From NCBI GenBank assembly GCA_002794465.1, contig MTSL01000077.1, positions 6,090 through 17,038 on the forward strand: a stretch of 10,949 nt of DNA, in the 5' to 3' direction. Each line of letters starts with the position of its first letter. Within the stretch, counting starts at the first letter, position 1. Positions 1-10,665 of this stretch are shown in pieces. The notes under the pieces are model-generated. The model was not told the DNA's origin, searched no databases, and worked only from the letters and a program-made list of their open reading frames with translations. A program made the position numbers and the translations under genes. The stretch is from Paramicrosporidium saccamoebae KSL3. Taxonomy: Eukaryota > Fungi > Cryptomycota.

Positions 1-311
1 GGTCCCAACAGTCAGCATGGCCAACATTGCTATTGCGGCAATGGTTTTCCATTCTCCCTCAAGAACGGGGAGCCAACGGCAAGAGCAACCCAGACCCAGA
101 GGACGTGTATTTGTGGGCTGAAGCGTGCCATCAACCACACTTCAGCCACGGCCGAGAAAATGACCGCAAGTGCGGTGCGACGAATATCGTCCGACAGAGC
201 GTCTACTTTACGAATATCAACGACTGTACAATGTGTTAACGCTAGAGAATGCTGTGTACTGATTATCTGGAACAAGTGAATTAAGATACCGCCGACACCG
301 AGGCTCATCAT
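1..311 (-). pseudogene. Membrane protein A, copy 1 (5' part, runs off left edge; 1-nt deletion = real frameshift or sequencing error)
   Basis: Colinear with copy 2 at offset 2311/2312; 74/103 aa identical by hand count. CCC at 56-58 versus CCCC at 2367-2370 shifts the frame. Restoring one base gives GEWKTIAAIAMLAMLTVGT, matching copy 2. ATGs at 311 and 308. Confidence 0.6.
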
Positions 312-926
312 TGTGCGTTGTGGGGGACTCACCGCGGGTCTACCCCTTGGCCAATCACAACTGGTACCAAACGTTGGGTGGTGCGAGGCAGCTTTAGGCT
401 CAGTCGGCCATCATGCTGCCCTGTGGCCTCTGGGGCGTTAAATGTGAGTCTGATTGATTTGAATAGCCAAGGCGTTCTCTTTTGCCAGCTGATTGCATCA
501 CACCTACCTTGTCGTCCAAAGACGGTCCAATTCTACACTTTATGGGCCATTAAGCATTCTGACTGACGTGCCAAGTCCGTCTATCACAGAATGTGTTCAA
601 TTGTGATGATTAGACTGTCTCACAACAAAGCTCTTATGAATTCAGAGCTAGTCAAAATCTTAGTGTCACGTCTTTTACCGTATGGGAGCTTTTGATTCTG
701 ATGGGGCGATATTCGTATTTTATATCTCCAAATGCACTGCAAAAGCCCCAAATGTGGCAAATTGCTTACGAGGCTCAAGGTTCTGCGCTAGCCAATGGCT
801 GCAGAGTAATAGCCATAGCCATAGTCAACTGAAACGAACCAATCAATGATTCTATTCAACGACGGGGGCCATTCATTCCTGATAGATATATATATCTTGA
901 AGTATCTACTCCACACACATCCTACC
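312..926. promoter_or_regulatory. Putative bidirectional promoter between A1 and B1
   Basis: Lies between divergent ATGs. Blocks identical to unit 2: 368-391, 791-810 (contains CCAAT) and 877-900 (contains TATATATA, ~40 nt before the B ATG). Confidence 0.6.
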
Positions 927-1568
927 ATGATGGATATTAGCACGGTCAATGATCGTTCTAGGAATGACTCGCAAAAACGACAGGAGAATGTCAGCACAGT
1001 GTACGAACTTTATTGGTGGTTCCACAATCACATCATCTTCCTTCCCATACTCTTCCCTGCGAACGTGGCAGAGTTGTTTTCTTACTGGACACCGATTGGG
1101 CTTACGATGCTTTACTTTATCTTTTTGGCGATCCTTAAATCCCGCGCAGCATATCATCGGAAAATTTACACACTACCAAACACTGATAATGGCGATGAAA
1201 GTAAGAGCAACTTAGCGATATGCCTGAAAAGTATCTTTTACTGTGAAGCCAAGATGGCTCCCTGCAGCAATTCTCTTATGTTTAGTCTTTGGAGAGTGCT
1301 GGGCTATCGGGTCGTGTATAAACTTTTTCCACAGCATCTCGTCTGCATATACTTTGCAGTGTCATGGCTCTCTTGGGTCATCCAGCTTTTCATGTCTGCA
1401 TATCTCGGTGACTGTTTTAGGCAGAGGGACGATTTGATCTACAATGGTCGACGTTTTAGAGTTATTCTGCCGGGAGCCCATTATTCCACGATTCAAGATG
1501 AGAAGCAGAACATTATGTATTATTCAACCATTGATCTTTGTGGGCTGGTTCCATCTAAAAATTTATAA
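927..1568 (+). CDS. Uncharacterised membrane protein B, copy 1 (213 aa, ~2-3 TM segments)
   Basis: Open frame; paralog 3251-3892 has the same length (642 nt) and aligns without gaps, 115/213 aa identical by hand count. Hydrophobic stretches FSYWTPIGLTMLYFIFLAIL and LVCIYFAVSWLSWVIQLFMSAYL. ATG 927 preferred over 846 because the 846-equivalent ATG is out of frame in copy 2. Confidence 0.8.
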   Translation: MMDISTVNDRSRNDSQKRQENVSTVYELYWWFHNHIIFLPILFPANVAELFSYWTPIGLTMLYFIFLAILKSRAAYHRKIYTLPNTDNGDESKSNLAICLKSIFYCEAKMAPCSNSLMFSLWRVLGYRVVYKLFPQHLVCIYFAVSWLSWVIQLFMSAYLGDCFRQRDDLIYNGRRFRVILPGAHYSTIQDEKQNIMYYSTIDLCGLVPSKNL

Positions 1569-1611
1569 GCAGCATTTCGATAAATCAATGTGCAGTGGTC
1601 GTCCTAATGTT

Positions 1612-1780
1612 GCGTAGTGGGGATAATACCACGGCCCAGTTTGGGCGAGAAGAGAACCTGTTCACTGCTAATCCTAGAATAATATGGATACACATTTCAC
1701 TGTCCTCAAATACCCAGCAACTAGGTCTCTTCCAAACTAATCAACCCTCTACGTCAAATACCCGACTAATCAATCCTCTG
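1612..1780. repeat. Non-coding segment X, direct repeat of 5356-5570
   Basis: GCGTAGTGGGGATAATACCAC (1612-1632) versus GCATAGTGGGGATAATACCAC (5356-5376), 20/21; TCAAATACC...CTAATCAATC at 1754-1775 versus 5544-5565. Confidence 0.8.
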
Positions 1781-1891
1781 CCTCTACGGCACACTAATAT
1801 ACATCTAGGCTGTAACGACCAGAATAGCGCCTCTTACTCATGGTCCCAGAAATACCACGATGAACCGCCCACTCTATACATGTATAACAGT

Positions 1892-2620
1892 TTATTCTTG
1901 AGTGTAGATGCAGGCGATAGCATGAAGTATAGCGGCTTCGCATGCAATAAGCGTTGCCTCTCGGTCGGTATGGGTGCACGTAGAAAGTATCATAAAGTCG
2001 CAGTACATGATTAGCCCGATCCAGGCAGTTGCAAAGAGTATGGCTCTGACTACTGAACGAAACTGGAAAACAAATATAATGGGCACGACAGTGAAAAGGT
2101 TGATTGCGGCTTTCCCGACCTCGCTCGGCTCTACCTCGCACCAGACCAAGAGCATGCAAAAACCGATGTATGCCATAAAGCTCATTGTGTACATAATGGT
2201 CCGCCATGGCTGTAACAAATCTCTCTGCTCGGGCTTTAACCATTCTATTGGCTTCAAGATTCTGTTTAGCCGCTCCTGTCCCGGTAGGGAGTCTCGGAAG
2301 TTGGACAGGGCAGTCCCAACAACCAGCATGGCTAGCATTACCATTGCAGCAATGGTTTTCCATTCTCCCCTAAGGAAAGGGGAGCCCCCGACAAGGACAA
2401 CCCAGACCCAAAGGATGTGGATTTGCGGACTGAAGCGTGCCATCAACACCATTTCACCCACAACCGAGAAAACGAAAACAACTGCAGCCCGACGGGCATT
2501 GTCTGAAAGTGCGCTAATTTCAACAAGATCAACGACTATAAAGCCTGTTAACACCAGAAGATGTTGTGTACTGATGATCTGGAACAAGTGAATCAAGATA
2601 CCGCCGACACCGAGGTACAT
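1892..2620 (-). CDS. Uncharacterised multi-pass membrane protein A, copy 2 (242 aa, ~7-9 hydrophobic segments)
   Basis: Uninterrupted, strongly hydrophobic ORF with two paralogs in the window. The ATG at 2620 aligns with ATG 308 in copy 1 and lies one codon from ATG 5014 in copy 3; the track's GTG at 2644 is not needed. Confidence 0.8.
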   Translation of the reverse strand: MYLGVGGILIHLFQIISTQHLLVLTGFIVVDLVEISALSDNARRAAVVFVFSVVGEMVLMARFSPQIHILWVWVVLVGGSPFLRGEWKTIAAMVMLAMLVVGTALSNFRDSLPGQERLNRILKPIEWLKPEQRDLLQPWRTIMYTMSFMAYIGFCMLLVWCEVEPSEVGKAAINLFTVVPIIFVFQFRSVVRAILFATAWIGLIMYCDFMILSTCTHTDREATLIACEAAILHAIACIYTQE

Positions 2621-3250
2621 TATTGTGTGTTGTGAGGGACTCACCGCGGGTCCATCTCTTAACCAATCACAACTGGTATCAAACGTTGGGTGGTGCGAGG
2701 CAGATTCAGGTTCAATCAGTCATCATGTTGCTCTGTAGCTTCTGGGATGTCAAATTTGAGTCTGACTGATTTTAAATAACCAACATGGGGGAATAGTCGA
2801 GGCGTTTTCTTTTGCAAGCTGATTGCATTGTACCTACATTTTCGCCCAAACACGGCCCAATTCTACATTATAGATACTATTGAACGCTTTAAATGACGTG
2901 TCAGGTCCGTCTATGACGGAATGTGCTCAGCTATGGCGGCTCGAATGTTTCAAACAATGCTCTTGTGCATTCAGAGTTTGTCAAAATCTTGGTGCCATAC
3001 TCTTTACTAAATGGTATCTTTTGATTATGAGGAGACGACGTTCATGGCTTATGTTACCGAGCGCACAATGAAAATCGGATGAAGCAATTTTTGCGGGGTC
3101 CAGCCTCCTACTGGCCAATGGCTGCAGAGTAATCATCGTAGTCAATCGGAATTGAAACTGGCCAATCAATGATTCCATTAAATTTACGGGGGCCACTCAC
3201 TCCTGATAGATATATATATCTTGATGTATCCATTCCGTACAAACCCCAGC
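2621..3250. promoter_or_regulatory. Putative bidirectional promoter between A2 and B2
   Basis: Homologous to 312-926; identical blocks at 2680-2703, 3114-3133 and 3201-3224 (TATA-like). Confidence 0.6.
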
Positions 3251-3892
3251 ATGGTAAATACTAACACAACCTACGATAGCTATTGGGATGCTTTATACGA
3301 AAGACTGGAATTTGTTGTAGCGTATTATAATCAACTTTGGTGCCTTCACATCTGCAGCATCTTTATTCCCACATTTATCCCAGTAAGTCGAGTAGATCGG
3401 TTCTTCTATTGGACACCAGTTGGGCTCATACCGCTGTATTTCCTCCTTTTGGCAATTCTTAAACGCCGCGCAGCATCTCAGTGGAAAATTGGCACGCTGC
3501 CAAACACTGATAATAGAGACGAAACCGAGAACACGTTGGTGACAGGCCTGAAAAAGATCTTTTACTCTGAAGCAAAGATGGCTCCCTGCATCCATCCATT
3601 CCTCTCTACTCTTTGGAGATTCCTGGGCTACCGTGTCGTGCATGAACTCTTCCCACGGCGTGTTGTCTACGTATATTTTATAGTGGCATGGCTTTCCTAT
3701 GTTTTTCAGGCTTTCATGTCTGCGTGCCTCTGTGACAGATCCAAGTGGGTCAATGATTTGGCTTATAATGGCCGACGTTTTAGAGCTGTTTGGCTGGGAG
3801 CCCATTATTCTACGCTTCAAGATGAGAATCAGAACATTTTGTATTACCCAACCATTGATCTTTATGGACTAGTCGCATCCAGAAATCTATAG
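3251..3892 (+). CDS. Uncharacterised membrane protein B, copy 2 (213 aa)
   Basis: Gap-free paralog of 927-1568 with shared blocks YWTP.GL, TLPNTDN, EAKMAPC, LGYRVV, YNGRRFR and GAHYST. AATAAA at 3903-3908 just after the stop. Confidence 0.8.
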   Translation: MVNTNTTYDSYWDALYERLEFVVAYYNQLWCLHICSIFIPTFIPVSRVDRFFYWTPVGLIPLYFLLLAILKRRAASQWKIGTLPNTDNRDETENTLVTGLKKIFYSEAKMAPCIHPFLSTLWRFLGYRVVHELFPRRVVYVYFIVAWLSYVFQAFMSACLCDRSKWVNDLAYNGRRFRAVWLGAHYSTLQDENQNILYYPTIDLYGLVASRNL

Positions 3893-4139
3893 ATGGCATT
3901 TCAATAAATCCATGAACAATAGTTTTTGTATTCTTCATTTAAGCTACAGTCACTACAATTCTCTTTTTCATTAATGGTTCCAAGTCATGTCAACCTACAA
4001 AAATTCTGCACTTTTACAGGTTTTCAAAACGAGGGCATGGAGTAATTCAGCCGCCCGATCGCCATATATCATCGTTTTGGAAATCCAACTGTAGATGCTG
4101 GGGGTGGTTAAAGAAAGCTAGACGAGACAAACCCGCCCA

Positions 4140-5014
4140 TTATATGGATAGACGGACGGGATCCATTTTAATGGCCTCGAAGATTCGCTCGGAGACTTTT
4201 ATCCCGGTAGATGAAAGGTGGTTAAAGCGGTCCCCAAAACCAGCAGGAGTGCTGTGAGTGTCTTGTTTGTCTCGCAAGGATGAACCAGATCCAAAACACG
4301 TGGATTTTATCATGATATCAAAAACCACTTTGAAAACAACGGAAATCATAAAAGCTTCTAGATCTTTGTAAAGAATATCCGGGTAGATAACAAAGCTGCA
4401 GTAACAGGCCGATGCTGCCCAGCCTGCCACAGGCACCGTCATACGAGGGCTCCATTTGTACCGGAAAAGAACTGTCACTAGCAGAAACGGGATTAGGCGA
4501 ATCACCGCCATGCCAATGCTGTACGGGCCAGCCCTACTCCATAGAGCAAACGAACTGGACGAGATTTATAGCGCCCAGCTGCTAGCAGAGCCCGGGTGGC
4601 CAAGTTTTCTCTCAATGTGGGCTTGACCCATTCAATAGCCTGGAGAAATTTGGTTACTATTTCTTGGCCTGGCAGGTGCTCATAAAAGCTGGTGAGTGCG
4701 GCCCCCACAGTCAGTATTCCTAGCATCTCGATCGCTACACAAAGCTCCCACTCTCCCCCTAGAAACGGGGTCCCAACAGCAAGGATCATTCACGCTCAGA
4801 ATATGTGGACCCTTGGGTTAACTCGTATAGACATTGCAGCTTCTGTGATGATGGTGGTGGTCAGTAGCGCGGCTCCGGCCCGGCGAGTGTTGTCCGATAA
4901 AGAGGTAATCTCAAAAGCATTGGCAACTATCTAACAGGTCAGTGCCAAAAGAGTTCGGGTACTGATGACTTGTAGAAAATATAGAGCAAGACCACTAGCA
5001 CTGAGACGCGTCAT
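4140..5014 (-). pseudogene. Membrane protein A, copy 3 (pseudogene)
   Basis: From ATG 5014: MTRLSASGLALYFLQVISTRTLLALTC*IVANAFEITSLSDNTRRA, aligning to copy 2. In-frame stops at 4931-4933 (TAG), 4796-4798 and 4790-4792 (TGA). Frameshift near 4565-4575 joins track ORFs 4502-4789 and 4140-4511. Confidence 0.85.
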
Positions 5015-5204
5015 GGCGCGCATTAAACAAGCTCGGTGAATAAATACGGAACATTGGCAGCCCACTCAAAAAGTACCTGATTTGGCATGTAGCGTAGCTA
5101 CATGATTGGTACAGACGCAGTGTTATTGCTACCGTGCAGTATAGAGGTTGCAAAGGCAGTTTGTAGAAATCTGCCGGCTGCTTCTTTATCGCATGTATCC
5201 TGCC

Positions 5205-5313
5205 AACTGTTTCACTATGCTGCAAAGGTTTTGTCAACTGTTTCATTGTACTACAAAGGTCTTGAATGGTTCCACTATACTGCAAAGGTCGTAAACGGTT
5301 CCACTCTAATACT
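5205..5313. repeat. Degenerate 29-31 bp minisatellite, about 3.7 units
   Basis: Units start at 5205, 5236, 5265 and 5294; consensus close to AA(C/T)(T/G)GTT(T/C)CA(C/T)T(A/G)T..T(G/A)CAAAGGT. Confidence 0.8.
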
Positions 5314-5355
5314 TCCCATTTAATACTTTGCTTTATCATAGAGATAATCTCTGTC

Positions 5356-5570
5356 GCATAGTGGGGATAATACCACATACTTCGTCAAGTGGAAAGAGAC
5401 GAGGTGAGAACTCATTCGCTGTTAATCCAGCAACCTACTTACAGTGTCACAAATAACGCAATAATCCTAACATGATGAAGATATAAATCTCATTATCTTT
5501 CATATATTGTTCCAATTGTATCATCCAAACTAGGAAATTATCTTCAAATACCTAGCTAATCAATCTTCTA
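5356..5570. repeat. Non-coding segment X', direct repeat of 1612-1780
   Basis: Same anchors as 1612-1780, with ~46 nt net extra sequence inside. Confidence 0.8.
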
Positions 5571-5654: not shown

Positions 5655-7181
5655 ATGAAGACGATAGTATTCCTCACCCTCTGGTGGTTGCTTGCAAACC
5701 AGAGCTGGTGTCTCGTGATCGGCTACAATTCAGCTCATGATCTGACCCTCAACCTGGGAAAAGGCTCCTTTAAAGCGCTCTTCGCCTCGACTCCTTTAAG
5801 TGATGTCAGTATGCCGCTTGTGGGTGAACTTCTTACCAACCCGCATTCAAACCTCAGGCCTTATTATTTCAGCAGCTGTGCTCGTCGCACCGACCTGCAT
5901 CTTGTCCTTCATAATGCGGCTAATCTAACCGAGACAACTCGCGATGCACTACTGGATTGGCAGTGTCTGGAAAAGGCACCAATGATCCGGGCATGGGCTC
6001 TTTCGATGCAATTGCCCACCGCCGTGCCACTCGATTATGCCGTTTGGACTCGGGAGGAGTGGATTGTTGCATTTCAGACTGCCCAATATCCACACCATTG
6101 GTGCGTCTCAGTGCCGACAAGTTTCCTGGACGACAATTTTTTGGACGAAATAGACTTGGTGTCGCATCTGAAAAAGCGTTGTCTGGAAGAAAATTATCCG
6201 AGCCGAACGCTCATAGTCAATGCGCTCCATAGAAGATTATTAAGTGCAAGTGAAGAGTCATTGACGCGGTTTTTGTTAGAGTTTCGTAAGCTTTGGCTGG
6301 GGCCGGATACTGAAAGCATCCTTAAGTACGTCATCTGCATGTCATTGAGCGGTACTGAAACGGCTGCCCTGAATGCCGCGCTATACCGCTGTCCGAATCT
6401 GAGTACCACGGCACCAAATGTTGAGGACAAAGTCCGAGCTCTGTTGCAGGGTGACTCTTCAACCAGCTACAAATTGTGCCTTTTAAAGATCCTAATGTTA
6501 GAAACGGGAATCCCGTCCGTCCTTTCAACAGTCAACCCGCAGCGCCCACCCATAGAAGGTGTTTCTTGTCACCAAGTGCTTCAATTTGTCACTGAGCATC
6601 TAGACAATGTGAATGCAGAGGATAAGCAAGATCTACTGGCTTTGCTGGGGATCCAGTATCAAGCGACTCTCTCCCACTTGTCAACCCCCGTGCATCTGCT
6701 GCTAGAGCAGTCCTTTGAGATGAGGTTGGCACTTTATAGACAAGCAGCCATGATGCCCGTCTCTAACTATGTGAGACCGCGACACTATTTATGCATTACA
6801 AATGACACGCTGAATCGCGCGTTGGAACGCTACATTTCTTCGAATGATTACTTGCGCAATGGCAACATGTTTAGACCACGGGTATTGTCCAATCTCCAAA
6901 AGCTGGAAACTGTCCTGAATTTATTAATATACTCTCTGGTGGTCTTTGGTAACCTCCCTGTGCGACTGAATCCAGCATTTTGCTCTGATTTCGGAAGGGA
7001 ATATCACTGGATTGACTTTGCGCACTATCTCAGCGATCCATCAAATAGACCTTTGTCAATGGAGCAGCTCGAGTTGCGGTCGGTACGGATAGAGCGTCAG
7101 TTTCGGAGGCTGTGGAAATCTTGGGGCTTTGACATTTATTTTAGTAGCGACCTCTGTAGCATGCTGACTGCACAATACTAA
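5655..7181 (+). CDS. Hypothetical secreted protein (508 aa, N-terminal signal peptide)
   Basis: 1.5-kb uninterrupted ORF. MKTIVFLTLWWLLANQSWC has a basic N-region, a hydrophobic core and small/polar residues before a likely cleavage site. No family recognised. Confidence 0.8.
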   Translation: MKTIVFLTLWWLLANQSWCLVIGYNSAHDLTLNLGKGSFKALFASTPLSDVSMPLVGELLTNPHSNLRPYYFSSCARRTDLHLVLHNAANLTETTRDALLDWQCLEKAPMIRAWALSMQLPTAVPLDYAVWTREEWIVAFQTAQYPHHWCVSVPTSFLDDNFLDEIDLVSHLKKRCLEENYPSRTLIVNALHRRLLSASEESLTRFLLEFRKLWLGPDTESILKYVICMSLSGTETAALNAALYRCPNLSTTAPNVEDKVRALLQGDSSTSYKLCLLKILMLETGIPSVLSTVNPQRPPIEGVSCHQVLQFVTEHLDNVNAEDKQDLLALLGIQYQATLSHLSTPVHLLLEQSFEMRLALYRQAAMMPVSNYVRPRHYLCITNDTLNRALERYISSNDYLRNGNMFRPRVLSNLQKLETVLNLLIYSLVVFGNLPVRLNPAFCSDFGREYHWIDFAHYLSDPSNRPLSMEQLELRSVRIERQFRRLWKSWGFDIYFSSDLCSMLTAQY

Positions 7182-7183
7182 TC

Positions 7184-8395
7184 TCACTTTACTGCAGCGA
7201 AGGGTGGCGTTCTGTATACAAAAGCTCTCCTATAAAGACATTTTCTTATTGCTCTCAACGGCCCAATCCGCCCATCTCCTCCATCCTTTTTGCTGCCTCC
7301 TACAATCATCAGACGACAATATTTCAATGCTACAATGTGCTCTTTGAGAATTGCAATTTCAGATCGGAACACGGCCTCCTGCTGTTGACAAGTCAGCAAG
7401 CTGGCCCTTGTTGTATTCAATTCCGCGGTGCATCGGCTCAATTCCTCGCGAGTCTGTTCGTTTGTTGCTCGTGACATTTCCAATTCTATTGTCAAAGCTT
7501 TTAGTCTTCCCTCCAGCTCCCCAGTCCTCTCTTGCAGTTTCACCAGCTCTGCTGTCCGCTCAATCAGCTCTTTTAGCTCTCGTCCCGTCGTCACCTCTGC
7601 AGGCCGTTCCTTGTGCAGTGCATTGTGTTGATCCTCATATTTTCGGTATTGTTCGATTCGACACTCTGCCGTATGCAGTTTCTCTTCCAGTAGTCGAAAG
7701 TTGTGTGTGGATTCACGCAGCACTTCGTTTTCGTGTTGAAGACGACGGTTGGACACTTCCAACTTGTGCAGTCGCCCCAGAGTCTCTGGATCCAATGCGG
7801 CACGCTGTTCGTTGGGAGTGATCAGAGATTGCTTAGAATGGAGTTGGTCCCGATGCAGCTGCAAGTCTAAAACTGCTTGCTCCTTTGACTTGAGCTGTTG
7901 ATCTTTGATTGCAATGCTCTCTATAAGGGATTCCTTTTCATTCTGAAATTGCGCTCTGCAAGAGTCCCTTTCAGTTGTCACACTCTGTAGATCACGCGTC
8001 AACTTTTTCTTTTCCCTTTCCACGTCAAAGAACACTTCTTTCAGCTCACTAATTTGTTTCCGCTCCTCCAACAATTGACCCTTTATCGCAGTCAGTTCAT
8101 TCTGAAGGTTTGTCCTCGTTTCTTCACAGTTTTTGCGCAGTTCAGCTTCGGATTCATGCAAAAATTTGCGATCCTTTTCCAATTCGACAATTCGAATGTC
8201 CTTTCCGGCAAGCGACTTTTCGGTGCGAGCGCGTTCATTCACAAGCTGTGTCTGCAGTCTCTCCAGTTCAATTCGAAGAGTGGATAGTTCCTGTCGTGCC
8301 TTGCGTACCTCAGAGGGATGAATAGGACTGGAGGAGAGACTGCCGATATTAGGGCGTTTTGTGGCAGGCGACGACAGGGCCGAATTTCCAGTCAT
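7184..8395 (-). CDS. MAD1: Coiled-coil protein resembling the N-terminal ~60% of spindle checkpoint protein Mad1 (ends at 7255 if a 34-nt intron is spliced)
   Basis: Heptad-rich E/K/R/L sequence. Segments resemble fungal Mad1 from memory and in the expected order: ELEKDRKFLHESE; LEVSNRRLQHENEVLRE...RLLEEKL; ELVKLQERTGELE; QEAVFRSEIAILKEHI. The ORF is secure; the Mad1 identity is about 0.6. Confidence 0.62.
   Translation of the reverse strand: MTGNSALSSPATKRPNIGSLSSSPIHPSEVRKARQELSTLRIELERLQTQLVNERARTEKSLAGKDIRIVELEKDRKFLHESEAELRKNCEETRTNLQNELTAIKGQLLEERKQISELKEVFFDVEREKKKLTRDLQSVTTERDSCRAQFQNEKESLIESIAIKDQQLKSKEQAVLDLQLHRDQLHSKQSLITPNEQRAALDPETLGRLHKLEVSNRRLQHENEVLRESTHNFRLLEEKLHTAECRIEQYRKYEDQHNALHKERPAEVTTGRELKELIERTAELVKLQERTGELEGRLKALTIELEMSRATNEQTREELSRCTAELNTTRASLLTCQQQEAVFRSEIAILKEHIVALKYCRLMIVGGSKKDGGDGRIGPLRAIRKCLYRRAFVYRTPPFAAVK
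7300..7333 (-). other. Candidate 34-nt phase-0 GT-AG intron in the Mad1-like gene
   Basis: Minus strand GTAGCATTGAAATATTGTCGTCTGATGATTGTAG has a CTGAT branch-like motif. Coiled-coil character stops here in the unspliced frame. Splicing gives EHI|EAAKRMEEMGGLGR* with the stop at 7255-7257. Confidence 0.45.
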
Positions 8396-10386: not shown

Positions 10387-10417
10387 TCATTTGATCTGTT
10401 TATAGTAAAGAATAATG

Positions 10418-10665
10418 GAGTTTGATCCGTGTTATAGTTGTTGGATTTGTAATACTAACTAAAGAGTTGAACCATGACATGTATTTGTAAGATTATAATA
10501 AAAACTAAAGAGTTGAATCCGTGTTATAGTTGTCGGATTTGTAATACTAACTAAAGAGTTGGATCCGTGACATATTTATAAGGTTGTGGTAAAAAATAAA
10601 GAGTTTGGCCGTGACCTGTTCATGAGATTTACAGTAAAACTAACAAGTTGGACCCACTATATCTT
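10418..10665. repeat. AT-rich ~46-bp tandem repeat with alternating unit types (92-bp higher-order period)
   Basis: Units start at 10418, 10464, 10510, 10556, 10601 and 10645 (lengths 46, 46, 46, 45, 44, partial). Units 1 and 3 are 43/46 identical; units 2, 4 and 5 share CC(A/G)TGAC. Confidence 0.9.

Follow-up and report, generated by a model that had tools for sequence, protein, structure and literature searches.

A tandemly amplified head-to-head pair of putative membrane-protein genes in Paramicrosporidium saccamoebae

Introduction

Microsporidian parasites carry large, lineage-restricted gene families, such as those of Nematocida and the interB family of Encephalitozoon, which are clustered in tandem, diverge fast, are rich in pseudogenes and encode membrane or secreted products. 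In reduced intracellular parasites, the families that expand tend to be those that are important for the infection apparatus or for contact with the host. We describe a related pattern in the strongly reduced genome (~7 Mb) of Paramicrosporidium saccamoebae KSL3, in a stretch of 10,949 nucleotides that we call the window (assembly GCA_002794465.1, contig MTSL01000077.1, positions 6,090 to 17,038 of the forward strand). Over its first 5,014 nucleotides two genes, here named A and B, recur as a divergently oriented pair.

Paramicrosporidium saccamoebae is an intranuclear parasite of amoebae and belongs to the Rozellomycota (accession MTSL00000000; Quandt et al., 2017, PMC5701793); the genome paper counts 3,750 protein models in its summary table. 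An earlier note, made from the letters of the window without database searches, took the pair for a candidate two-component recognition or toxin–antidote module. The analysis reported here best supports another description, that of a lineage-restricted, two-gene, divergently transcribed membrane unit that has been amplified in tandem and turns over by birth and death, and whose two products probably work together. We found no description of either family in the literature.

Results and discussion

Anatomy of the array

The repeated unit consists of an A gene on the minus strand, a spacer of ~0.62 kb and a B gene on the plus strand. It measures ~2.3 kb, and its copies are 70–80% identical across ~1.9 kb. 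The earlier note had put the period at ~2.3–2.4 kb, and so it is: a 69-nt repeat family at positions 2, 2313 and 4701 gives spacings of 2311 and 2388, and the two spacers between head-to-head genes measure 615 and 630 bp. Within the window, positions 56–355 match 2368–2667 at 79% identity and 1013–1312 match 3337–3636 at 72%. A blastn self-comparison of the surrounding 18.7-kb locus (L001, in which a window position equals 12621 minus the L001 coordinate, so that negative positions lie to the left of the window) aligned −315..1590 with 1998..3914 at 73.6% identity over 1939 columns. The array extends 1.5 kb beyond the left window edge and totals three A and three B copies, in the order (window orientation) glutaminyl-tRNA synthetase gene (GlnRS), B0(+), A1(−), B1(+), A2(−), B2(+), A3(−), ORF508(+). 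Assembly gaps bound the window on both sides, one of 10 N on the left (L001 12621–12630), which falls within the pseudogene A1, and one of 172 N on the right (L001 1500–1671).

The sole intact A copy in the array is A2 (also P0001; 1892..2620, minus strand), an annotated gene of 242 amino acids (aa) with ~7–8 predicted transmembrane helices. Among the B copies, B1 (927..1568, plus strand; L001 11053–11694) is an intact open reading frame (ORF) of 213 aa that matches the B-family hidden Markov model (HMM) at E = 1e-72, and B2 (also P0002; 3251..3892, plus strand) is likewise intact, 213 aa long and annotated. The third copy, B0 (−1311..−672, plus strand), adjoins the GlnRS gene and carries one frameshift ~13 codons before its stop. 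That the array includes decayed members, as first proposed from the sequence, is confirmed by A1 and A3. The 5′ part of the pseudogene A1 (1–311, continuing past the 10-N gap to ~−340, minus strand) matches A2 residues 1–90; its lesions are a 1-nt deletion near position 64 and, beyond the gap, two 2-nt deletions together with an in-frame TAG, and so at least three frameshifts and a stop. A3 (4341..5014, minus strand) is an old, heavily decayed A pseudogene with three in-frame stops and a frameshift. Partial relics of a second A gene trail A1 (−326..−475; L001 ~12947–13096; tblastn E = 9e-5) and A3, where the relic lies in the B2/A3 tail spacer (4160..4317, minus strand; A2 residues ~63–128; tblastn E = 3e-4); between them the two relics cover A2 residues ~63–148, and no such relic trails A2. 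The relics imply an older A–A duplication or unequal crossover that would predate the amplification of the unit.

The GTG and TTG starts in the ORF list are not the real ones: a few codons further in, every A copy has an ATG in frame. For B we chose the ATG ~35 nt 3′ of a conserved TATATATAT run. The chosen starts agree with the GenBank models of A2 (242 aa) and B2 (213 aa). The GenBank record has no gene at the intact B1, yet fragments of A1 and A3 are annotated as proteins of 93 and 95 aa.

Two multigene families that occur together

The intact A protein of the array, A2, is encoded once in the public collection, on contig MTSL01000077.1 (49,171 bp) of GCA_002794465.1. Word-seeded database searches returned only A2 with A2 as the query and nothing with B1, whereas an exhaustive HMMER search with a profile of B1 and B2 recovered 38 relatives with lengths of ~200 aa, of which 29 reach E ≤ 1e-10. 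The impression that B is an orphan thus stemmed from the limited sensitivity of word-seeded searching and was overturned by the profile. The term, which the earlier note applied to both genes, holds in that neither belongs to a curated family and fails in that both belong to lineage-restricted multigene families. Conserved motifs of the B family are LLAILKYRAAHHRKI, EAKMxP, LFP, VYNGRRYR and IQDExQNxLYYPTxDLxGLIP. All named members are hypothetical proteins of P. saccamoebae (PSACC_02190, 02498, 02503 and 01406), and the remaining members come from JGI metagenome and Logan/SRA contigs; besides the array, P. saccamoebae has at least seven further B copies or fragments at four loci. A pattern scan of metagenomes with a tighter B alignment gave 22 matches, which are unconfirmed, and a scan of viral contigs found nothing. 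Comparison of A with B revealed no sequence relationship between the two.

The six-frame ORFs of the B-bearing loci were searched with A2 first and then with A-family HMMs, which gave new hits independent of the model at E = 3.5e-28, 3.4e-23, 9.6e-11 and 3.4e-11. An A-like gene or pseudogene adjoins B at seven of the nine distinct loci, and at six of them head-to-head, contigs of other organisms included. At these loci the paralogs have diverged to 20–25% identity for A and 24–42% for B. The association appears to go far beyond chance, because A-like genes are very few among the 3,750 protein models.

In P. saccamoebae, locus L002 (contig MTSL01000150.1, 1–4036) holds, in order, B, B, an A of 254 aa (minus strand), B and a truncated A of 130 aa (minus strand). 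This cluster starts no more than 268 bp from the contig end and may run past the assembly. L003 comprises an A fragment (−), B (+) and an A of 212 aa (−), to which A2 aligns at E = 8e-8 over ~180 residues, and L012 (PSACC_02503) comprises a B fragment, A pseudogene fragments (−), B (+) and a second B fragment. At L012 4238–5222 (+) an annotated 288-aa gene lies opposite the A-like pseudogene fragments of the minus strand (4063–5491) and is probably a spurious call. Beyond this organism, an A gene (−) is head-to-head with B on the Logan contig L009 (E = 3.5e-28, a sequence outside the HMM model) and on the JGI contig L010 (E = 9.6e-11, A being cut at the contig end), and on the JGI contigs L005–7 a 64-aa A fragment lies ~1.5 kb downstream of B on the same strand. 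In the sequence available, B occurs without A at L004, with an IDO gene on its upstream side and the contig end 467 bp past B, and at L008 (2.9 kb), where the convergent neighbour looks ankyrin-like by eye. The earlier note had named independent occurrence of A and B elsewhere as something that would refute its reading; for B this is partly the case, at L004 and L008, and the definition of the unit as head-to-head stands. A convergent arrangement, B→ ←A, was considered as the conserved unit on the strength of L003 and L002 and was dropped after L009, L010 and L012. On the JGI contigs L005 (13113–14386) and L006 (10155–11428), a Ty3/gypsy-type retroelement (integrase, RNase H, reverse transcriptase) lies ~7 kb from B; such an element was seen near a cassette only there, and not near the P. 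saccamoebae cassettes.

Across the P. saccamoebae loci examined, A has decayed more often than B: eight intact B copies plus B0 stand against three intact A copies, and at least six A copies are decayed.

A conserved head-to-head spacer

The A1/B1 intergenic region (312..926, 615 bp) and the A2/B2 intergenic region (2621..3250, 630 bp) are 76.4% identical, most strongly so next to each start codon, while synonymous sites of the flanking A and B genes differ at 38–48% between units. Because the spacer is more conserved than the synonymous sites of its neighbours, we infer that A and B share a bidirectional promoter. Candidate elements include CCAAT at 792 and 839 and the TATA-like TATATATAT run ~35 nt 5′ of the B start codon in the A1/B1 spacer, and their positions are conserved in the second unit, with CCAAT at 3115 and 3162; the number of CCAAT motifs in the spacer is not significant on its own. 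The spacer upstream of A3, towards ORF508, has no recognisable homology to the A/B spacers.

Divergence, selection and turnover

The copies are as diverged as the earlier note described them. B1 and B2 share 115 of 213 residues (54.0%), the 54% it had given. For A it had given ~72% over the visible part, and the measured value is slightly lower: over A2 residues 1–90, A1 and A2 are 65.6% identical by tblastn and 70% (63/90) after frameshift correction. A3 and A2 share 42% of amino acids over residues 3–136. The Nei–Gojobori ratio of nonsynonymous to synonymous change (omega) is 0.26 (B0/B1), 0.35 (B0/B2) and 0.40 (B1/B2) for B, and 0.34 (A1/A2) and 0.12 (A3/A2, with synonymous divergence saturated) for A. 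Both are genuine genes, because they show coding constraint (omega 0.12–0.40), and since omega is low in the pseudogene copies too, these would therefore have been under constraint for much of their history. The paralogs show no sign of diversifying selection: in comparisons of 40-codon windows of B, pN/pS stays between 0.24 and 0.78 throughout. Diversification of the kind expected of recognition genes is accordingly not what these copies display.

The longest identical run that B0 and B1 share is a 173-nt tract (839..1011, plus strand, 100%), which takes in promoter-proximal sequence and ~28 codons at the start of the gene and is flanked by sequence only ~75% identical. It would indicate recent gene conversion or assembly collapse. 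The tail-to-tail spacer between B1 and A2 (1569..1891) is peculiar to that unit; its identity to the other two tail spacers, 60–63%, is no higher than that of a shuffled control (63.7%), and it is thus unrelated to them. With its identical tract, its A relics and this unrelated tail spacer, the array has a mosaic history. It combines tandem units of common origin, a mixture of intact genes and pseudogenes, and purifying selection on the retained copies, the features of birth-and-death evolution.

Two other origins for the pattern were considered and rejected. A mutation bias resembling repeat-induced point mutation was dismissed because transitions are symmetric, the transition/transversion ratio is 2.1 and the pseudogenes show no GC depletion. 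The array does not look like cargo of a mobile element either, as the window lacks inverted repeats and the flanking genes are housekeeping genes.

Predicted proteins

Both products are predicted membrane proteins that we could assign to no family, in keeping with the first reading of the sequence. A, of ~240 aa, has ~7–8 hydrophobic helices by hydropathy and in AlphaFold2 (AF2) models, and its conserved core is made up of the segment W.W....PFL and, at the C-terminus, a helix with EAA..H. The single-sequence AF2 model of A2 is all-helical and too poor for a fold search (mean predicted local distance difference test score, pLDDT, 47). B, of ~210 aa, is predicted to cross the membrane with three or four helices and to carry a small beta domain at its C-terminus; the motif LKYRAAHHRKI, which is strongly basic, would lie next to the membrane. 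Its AF2 model, built from a 24-sequence alignment (pLDDT 76, predicted TM-score (pTM) 0.61), places helices at residues 5–37, 45–52, 55–79, 95–105, 116–133 and 136–166 and a four-strand beta domain at 170–200, the latter being the most conserved and best-predicted part of the protein. The positive-inside rule and the model suggest that the conserved parts of B face the cytosol and that its external loops are tiny.

Pfam and NCBIfam scans of the family members gave only scattered chance matches of single members and no family for A or B, and searches of PDB sequences with A, B and both profiles gave nothing meaningful. The scans found no wtf membership for A or B in Pfam, and no IPT/TIG (tgr) or doc/cwr domain in either. 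The earlier note had claimed no homology to wtf, tgr, doc or cwr, and by Pfam there is none; the cassette consists of two unrelated genes.

Explanations of the A–B pairing

Partnership and co-regulation are the most economical explanation of the locus, because the head-to-head linkage is conserved and the spacer constrained. The mechanism that we prefer, with a probability of about 0.5, is a hetero-oligomeric membrane complex in which B is the more indispensable subunit. In this scheme A and B would be transcribed divergently from a conserved spacer of ~0.35–0.8 kb. The cassette is present at five or more P. saccamoebae loci as well as in uncultured relatives, and probably evolves by segmental tandem duplication, by gene conversion or unequal crossing-over, by frequent pseudogenisation and under relaxed purifying selection. 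The two products may then act jointly in the parasite membrane as a channel- or transport-like hetero-oligomer, B being its core subunit, because B is retained even when alone, and A its more dispensable partner; copy-number turnover may reflect adaptation at the interface between parasite and host. Some observations weigh against this scheme. Co-expression and physical partnership are read from linkage, and adjacency could be inherited passively, each duplication copying both genes. At L004 and L008, B has no A beside it, in sequence that reaches only 467 bp past B and only 2.9 kb, respectively, and every locus was reached via B, which places an A without B beyond the reach of the survey. An obligate one-to-one partnership is disfavoured because most A copies are dead beside intact B. 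Finally, a scaffold gap interrupts the array, and misassembly might account for the 173 nt over which B0 and B1 are identical.

The main rival is that A and B are unrelated lineage-specific genes, neighbours by ancestral chance, that have been copied together by segmental duplication and are functionally independent. Passive co-duplication agrees with the blocks of duplication, which cover both genes contiguously, with the differing decay rates of A and B, and with B genes that stay intact although their A is dead or missing (in the window array and at L012, L004 and L008). It accords poorly, however, with the retention of adjacency, mostly head-to-head, at 20–25% (A) and 24–42% (B) identity, in other organisms too, and with a spacer more constrained than synonymous sites; moreover, under birth and death with the frequent rearrangement seen in the relics and in the unique spacer, a linkage that is not under selection should have been lost at more loci. 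We consider it less probable, though it is the competitor to be taken most seriously. In a different account B would belong to the MscS superfamily and have diverged from it to an extreme degree, its pore helix being followed by an Sm/SH3-like beta domain, and A would be a lineage-specific membrane partner. It is compatible with a cassette as described above, the mechanism then being osmotic or turgor-gated solute release, for example in spore germination. In a Foldseek search of the B model against the PDB, all of the top 40 hits were MscS-family chains (MscS, MSL, YnaI, MscK and Flycatcher), aligned over 165–230 columns with a probability of up to 0.92–0.93; MscS-type proteins were among the leading matches of a viral-library fold search too, and the order of elements, helices and then a four-strand beta domain after the last long helix, is the same. 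The Foldseek hits have E values of only ~1e-2, however, with TM-scores of 0.17–0.29 and root-mean-square deviations of 14–25 Å, and the viral-library hits are equally weak. An hhalign comparison of the B profile with E. coli MscS gave a probability of 0.2%, and none of the 24 B members matches the MS_channel models of Pfam and NCBIfam. The MscS pore helix carries a Gly/Ala pattern, and the helix preceding the beta domain of B is aromatic-rich and lacks it. The element order of B is therefore best called MscS-like, and we regard its membership of the family, and with it the channel account, as doubtful.

Least probable is the kind of module with which the earlier note had begun, a selfish poison–antidote or self/non-self cassette with matched A and B, in which solo intact B genes would be orphan antidotes left after toxin decay. 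Just as remote is a variant in which A damages membranes, B protects against it as its cognate partner, and the cassette spreads and then decays, toxin first. Such a cassette would be tightly linked, multi-copy and dispersed, with many pseudogenes, and would decay asymmetrically, A being lost and B kept, all of which the loci display; the genome paper also reports a complete meiosis toolkit and probable diploidy for P. saccamoebae (PMC5701793). Against it stand the absence of diversifying selection (omega 0.12–0.40, no window above 0.78), the lack of homology to any known driver, toxin–antitoxin or allorecognition protein in Pfam and NCBIfam scans, and the absence of any observation of sex or cell fusion in P. 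saccamoebae. The probably cytosolic conserved parts of B, with their tiny external loops, would also suit surface recognition poorly. The claim of linked partners with unit-specific matching fares unevenly: linkage is borne out, with adjacency at seven of nine loci and a head-to-head arrangement at six, and matching is not, since the array has a single intact A among its three, as opposed to two or three intact B copies, intact copies are far commoner for B than for A across the genome, and B lacks A at L004 and L008. Nothing supports a toxin–antidote or allorecognition module at present, and it remains speculation; if true, a selfish or compatibility cassette would be the first of its kind in the Rozellomycota/Microsporidia lineage.

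Flanks of the array

To the left of the array lie the GlnRS gene, a gene with a Myb domain and one with a biotin/lipoyl domain; to the right lie an uncharacterised ORF of 508 aa, a coiled-coil gene, an aldehyde dehydrogenase (ALDH) gene and the RNA polymerase subunit gene Rpb4. The cassette loci seen are surrounded by housekeeping genes (GlnRS, ALDH, Tim17, proteasome, topoisomerase), and there are no subtelomeric signs. ORF508 (5655–7181, plus strand, annotated) has a hydrophobic N-terminus resembling a signal peptide (residues 4–22) and no Pfam match, and it may be another lineage-specific secreted protein; it is head-to-head with the A3 pseudogene, and the spacer between them is not homologous to the A/B spacers. 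In that spacer a tandem repeat of 29–31 nt is present in ~3 copies at 77% matches (5204–5305). The coiled-coil gene (7184–8395, minus strand) is annotated at 446 aa, apparently with an extra exon, and its match to CCDC113/96 is weak and below threshold. An AT-rich 92-nt tandem repeat with a 46-nt sub-period (10400–10605) lies 3′ of the ALDH gene, near the 172-N gap. A search of the window for RNA genes and tRNAs found none.

Comparison with known systems

For all its reduction, the genome of P. saccamoebae retains two undescribed families of membrane proteins and keeps copying them as a fixed pair of genes. Their conserved linkage suggests, as a concrete hypothesis open to test, that two otherwise uncharacterised proteins are partners. 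If B proves to be channel-like with an MscS-type architecture, it will bear on osmotic and turgor steps in such parasites. The locus also offers a compact example of birth-and-death evolution, in which putative gene conversion, chimeric relics and intact genes that lack annotation occur together; in the annotation B1 should be added and the likely spurious L012 gene call removed.

Among described systems, fungal divergent pairs (histone H2A–H2B and H3–H4; GAL1–GAL10) resemble A/B in their head-to-head orientation, in the short conserved spacer and in being duplicated together, and positionally conserved CCAAT and TATA-like elements in the A/B spacer recall them too. The A/B products differ in being uncharacterised membrane proteins, which may be co-expressed. 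MscS channels share with B membrane helices followed by a small, predicted Sm/SH3-like beta domain, and dominate its Foldseek ranking; B, in contrast, has no sequence or profile similarity to them, no Gly/Ala-rich pore helix and no C-terminal alpha/beta domain, is only ~210 aa long and gives low TM-scores. The wtf genes of Schizosaccharomyces pombe, tgrB1/tgrC1 of Dictyostelium and the doc and cwr pairs of Neurospora are, like A and B, linked or repeated fast-evolving genes with pseudogenes and membrane proteins; A beside B at seven of nine loci matches the tight, co-inherited linkage of allorecognition pairs, and the head-to-head orientation is that of tgrB1/tgrC1. Unlike A/B, however, a wtf driver is a single gene whose two transcripts, from alternative starts, give both poison and antidote, and the tgr proteins, which are large, span the membrane once and carry IPT/TIG domains; A/B show neither homology to these systems nor a signature of diversifying selection. 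The expanded families of microsporidia resemble A/B in being restricted to one parasite lineage, lacking a curated domain and comprising multi-copy, tandem, pseudogene-rich genes for membrane proteins. They differ in that A and B are two unrelated families amplified jointly as a fixed head-to-head pair, lie amid housekeeping genes and share no sequence relationship with them. A/B therefore fit a familiar theme, that of lineage-specific expanded families in microsporidia-like parasites, and what is unusual is that two unrelated membrane-protein families are amplified as one fixed pair.

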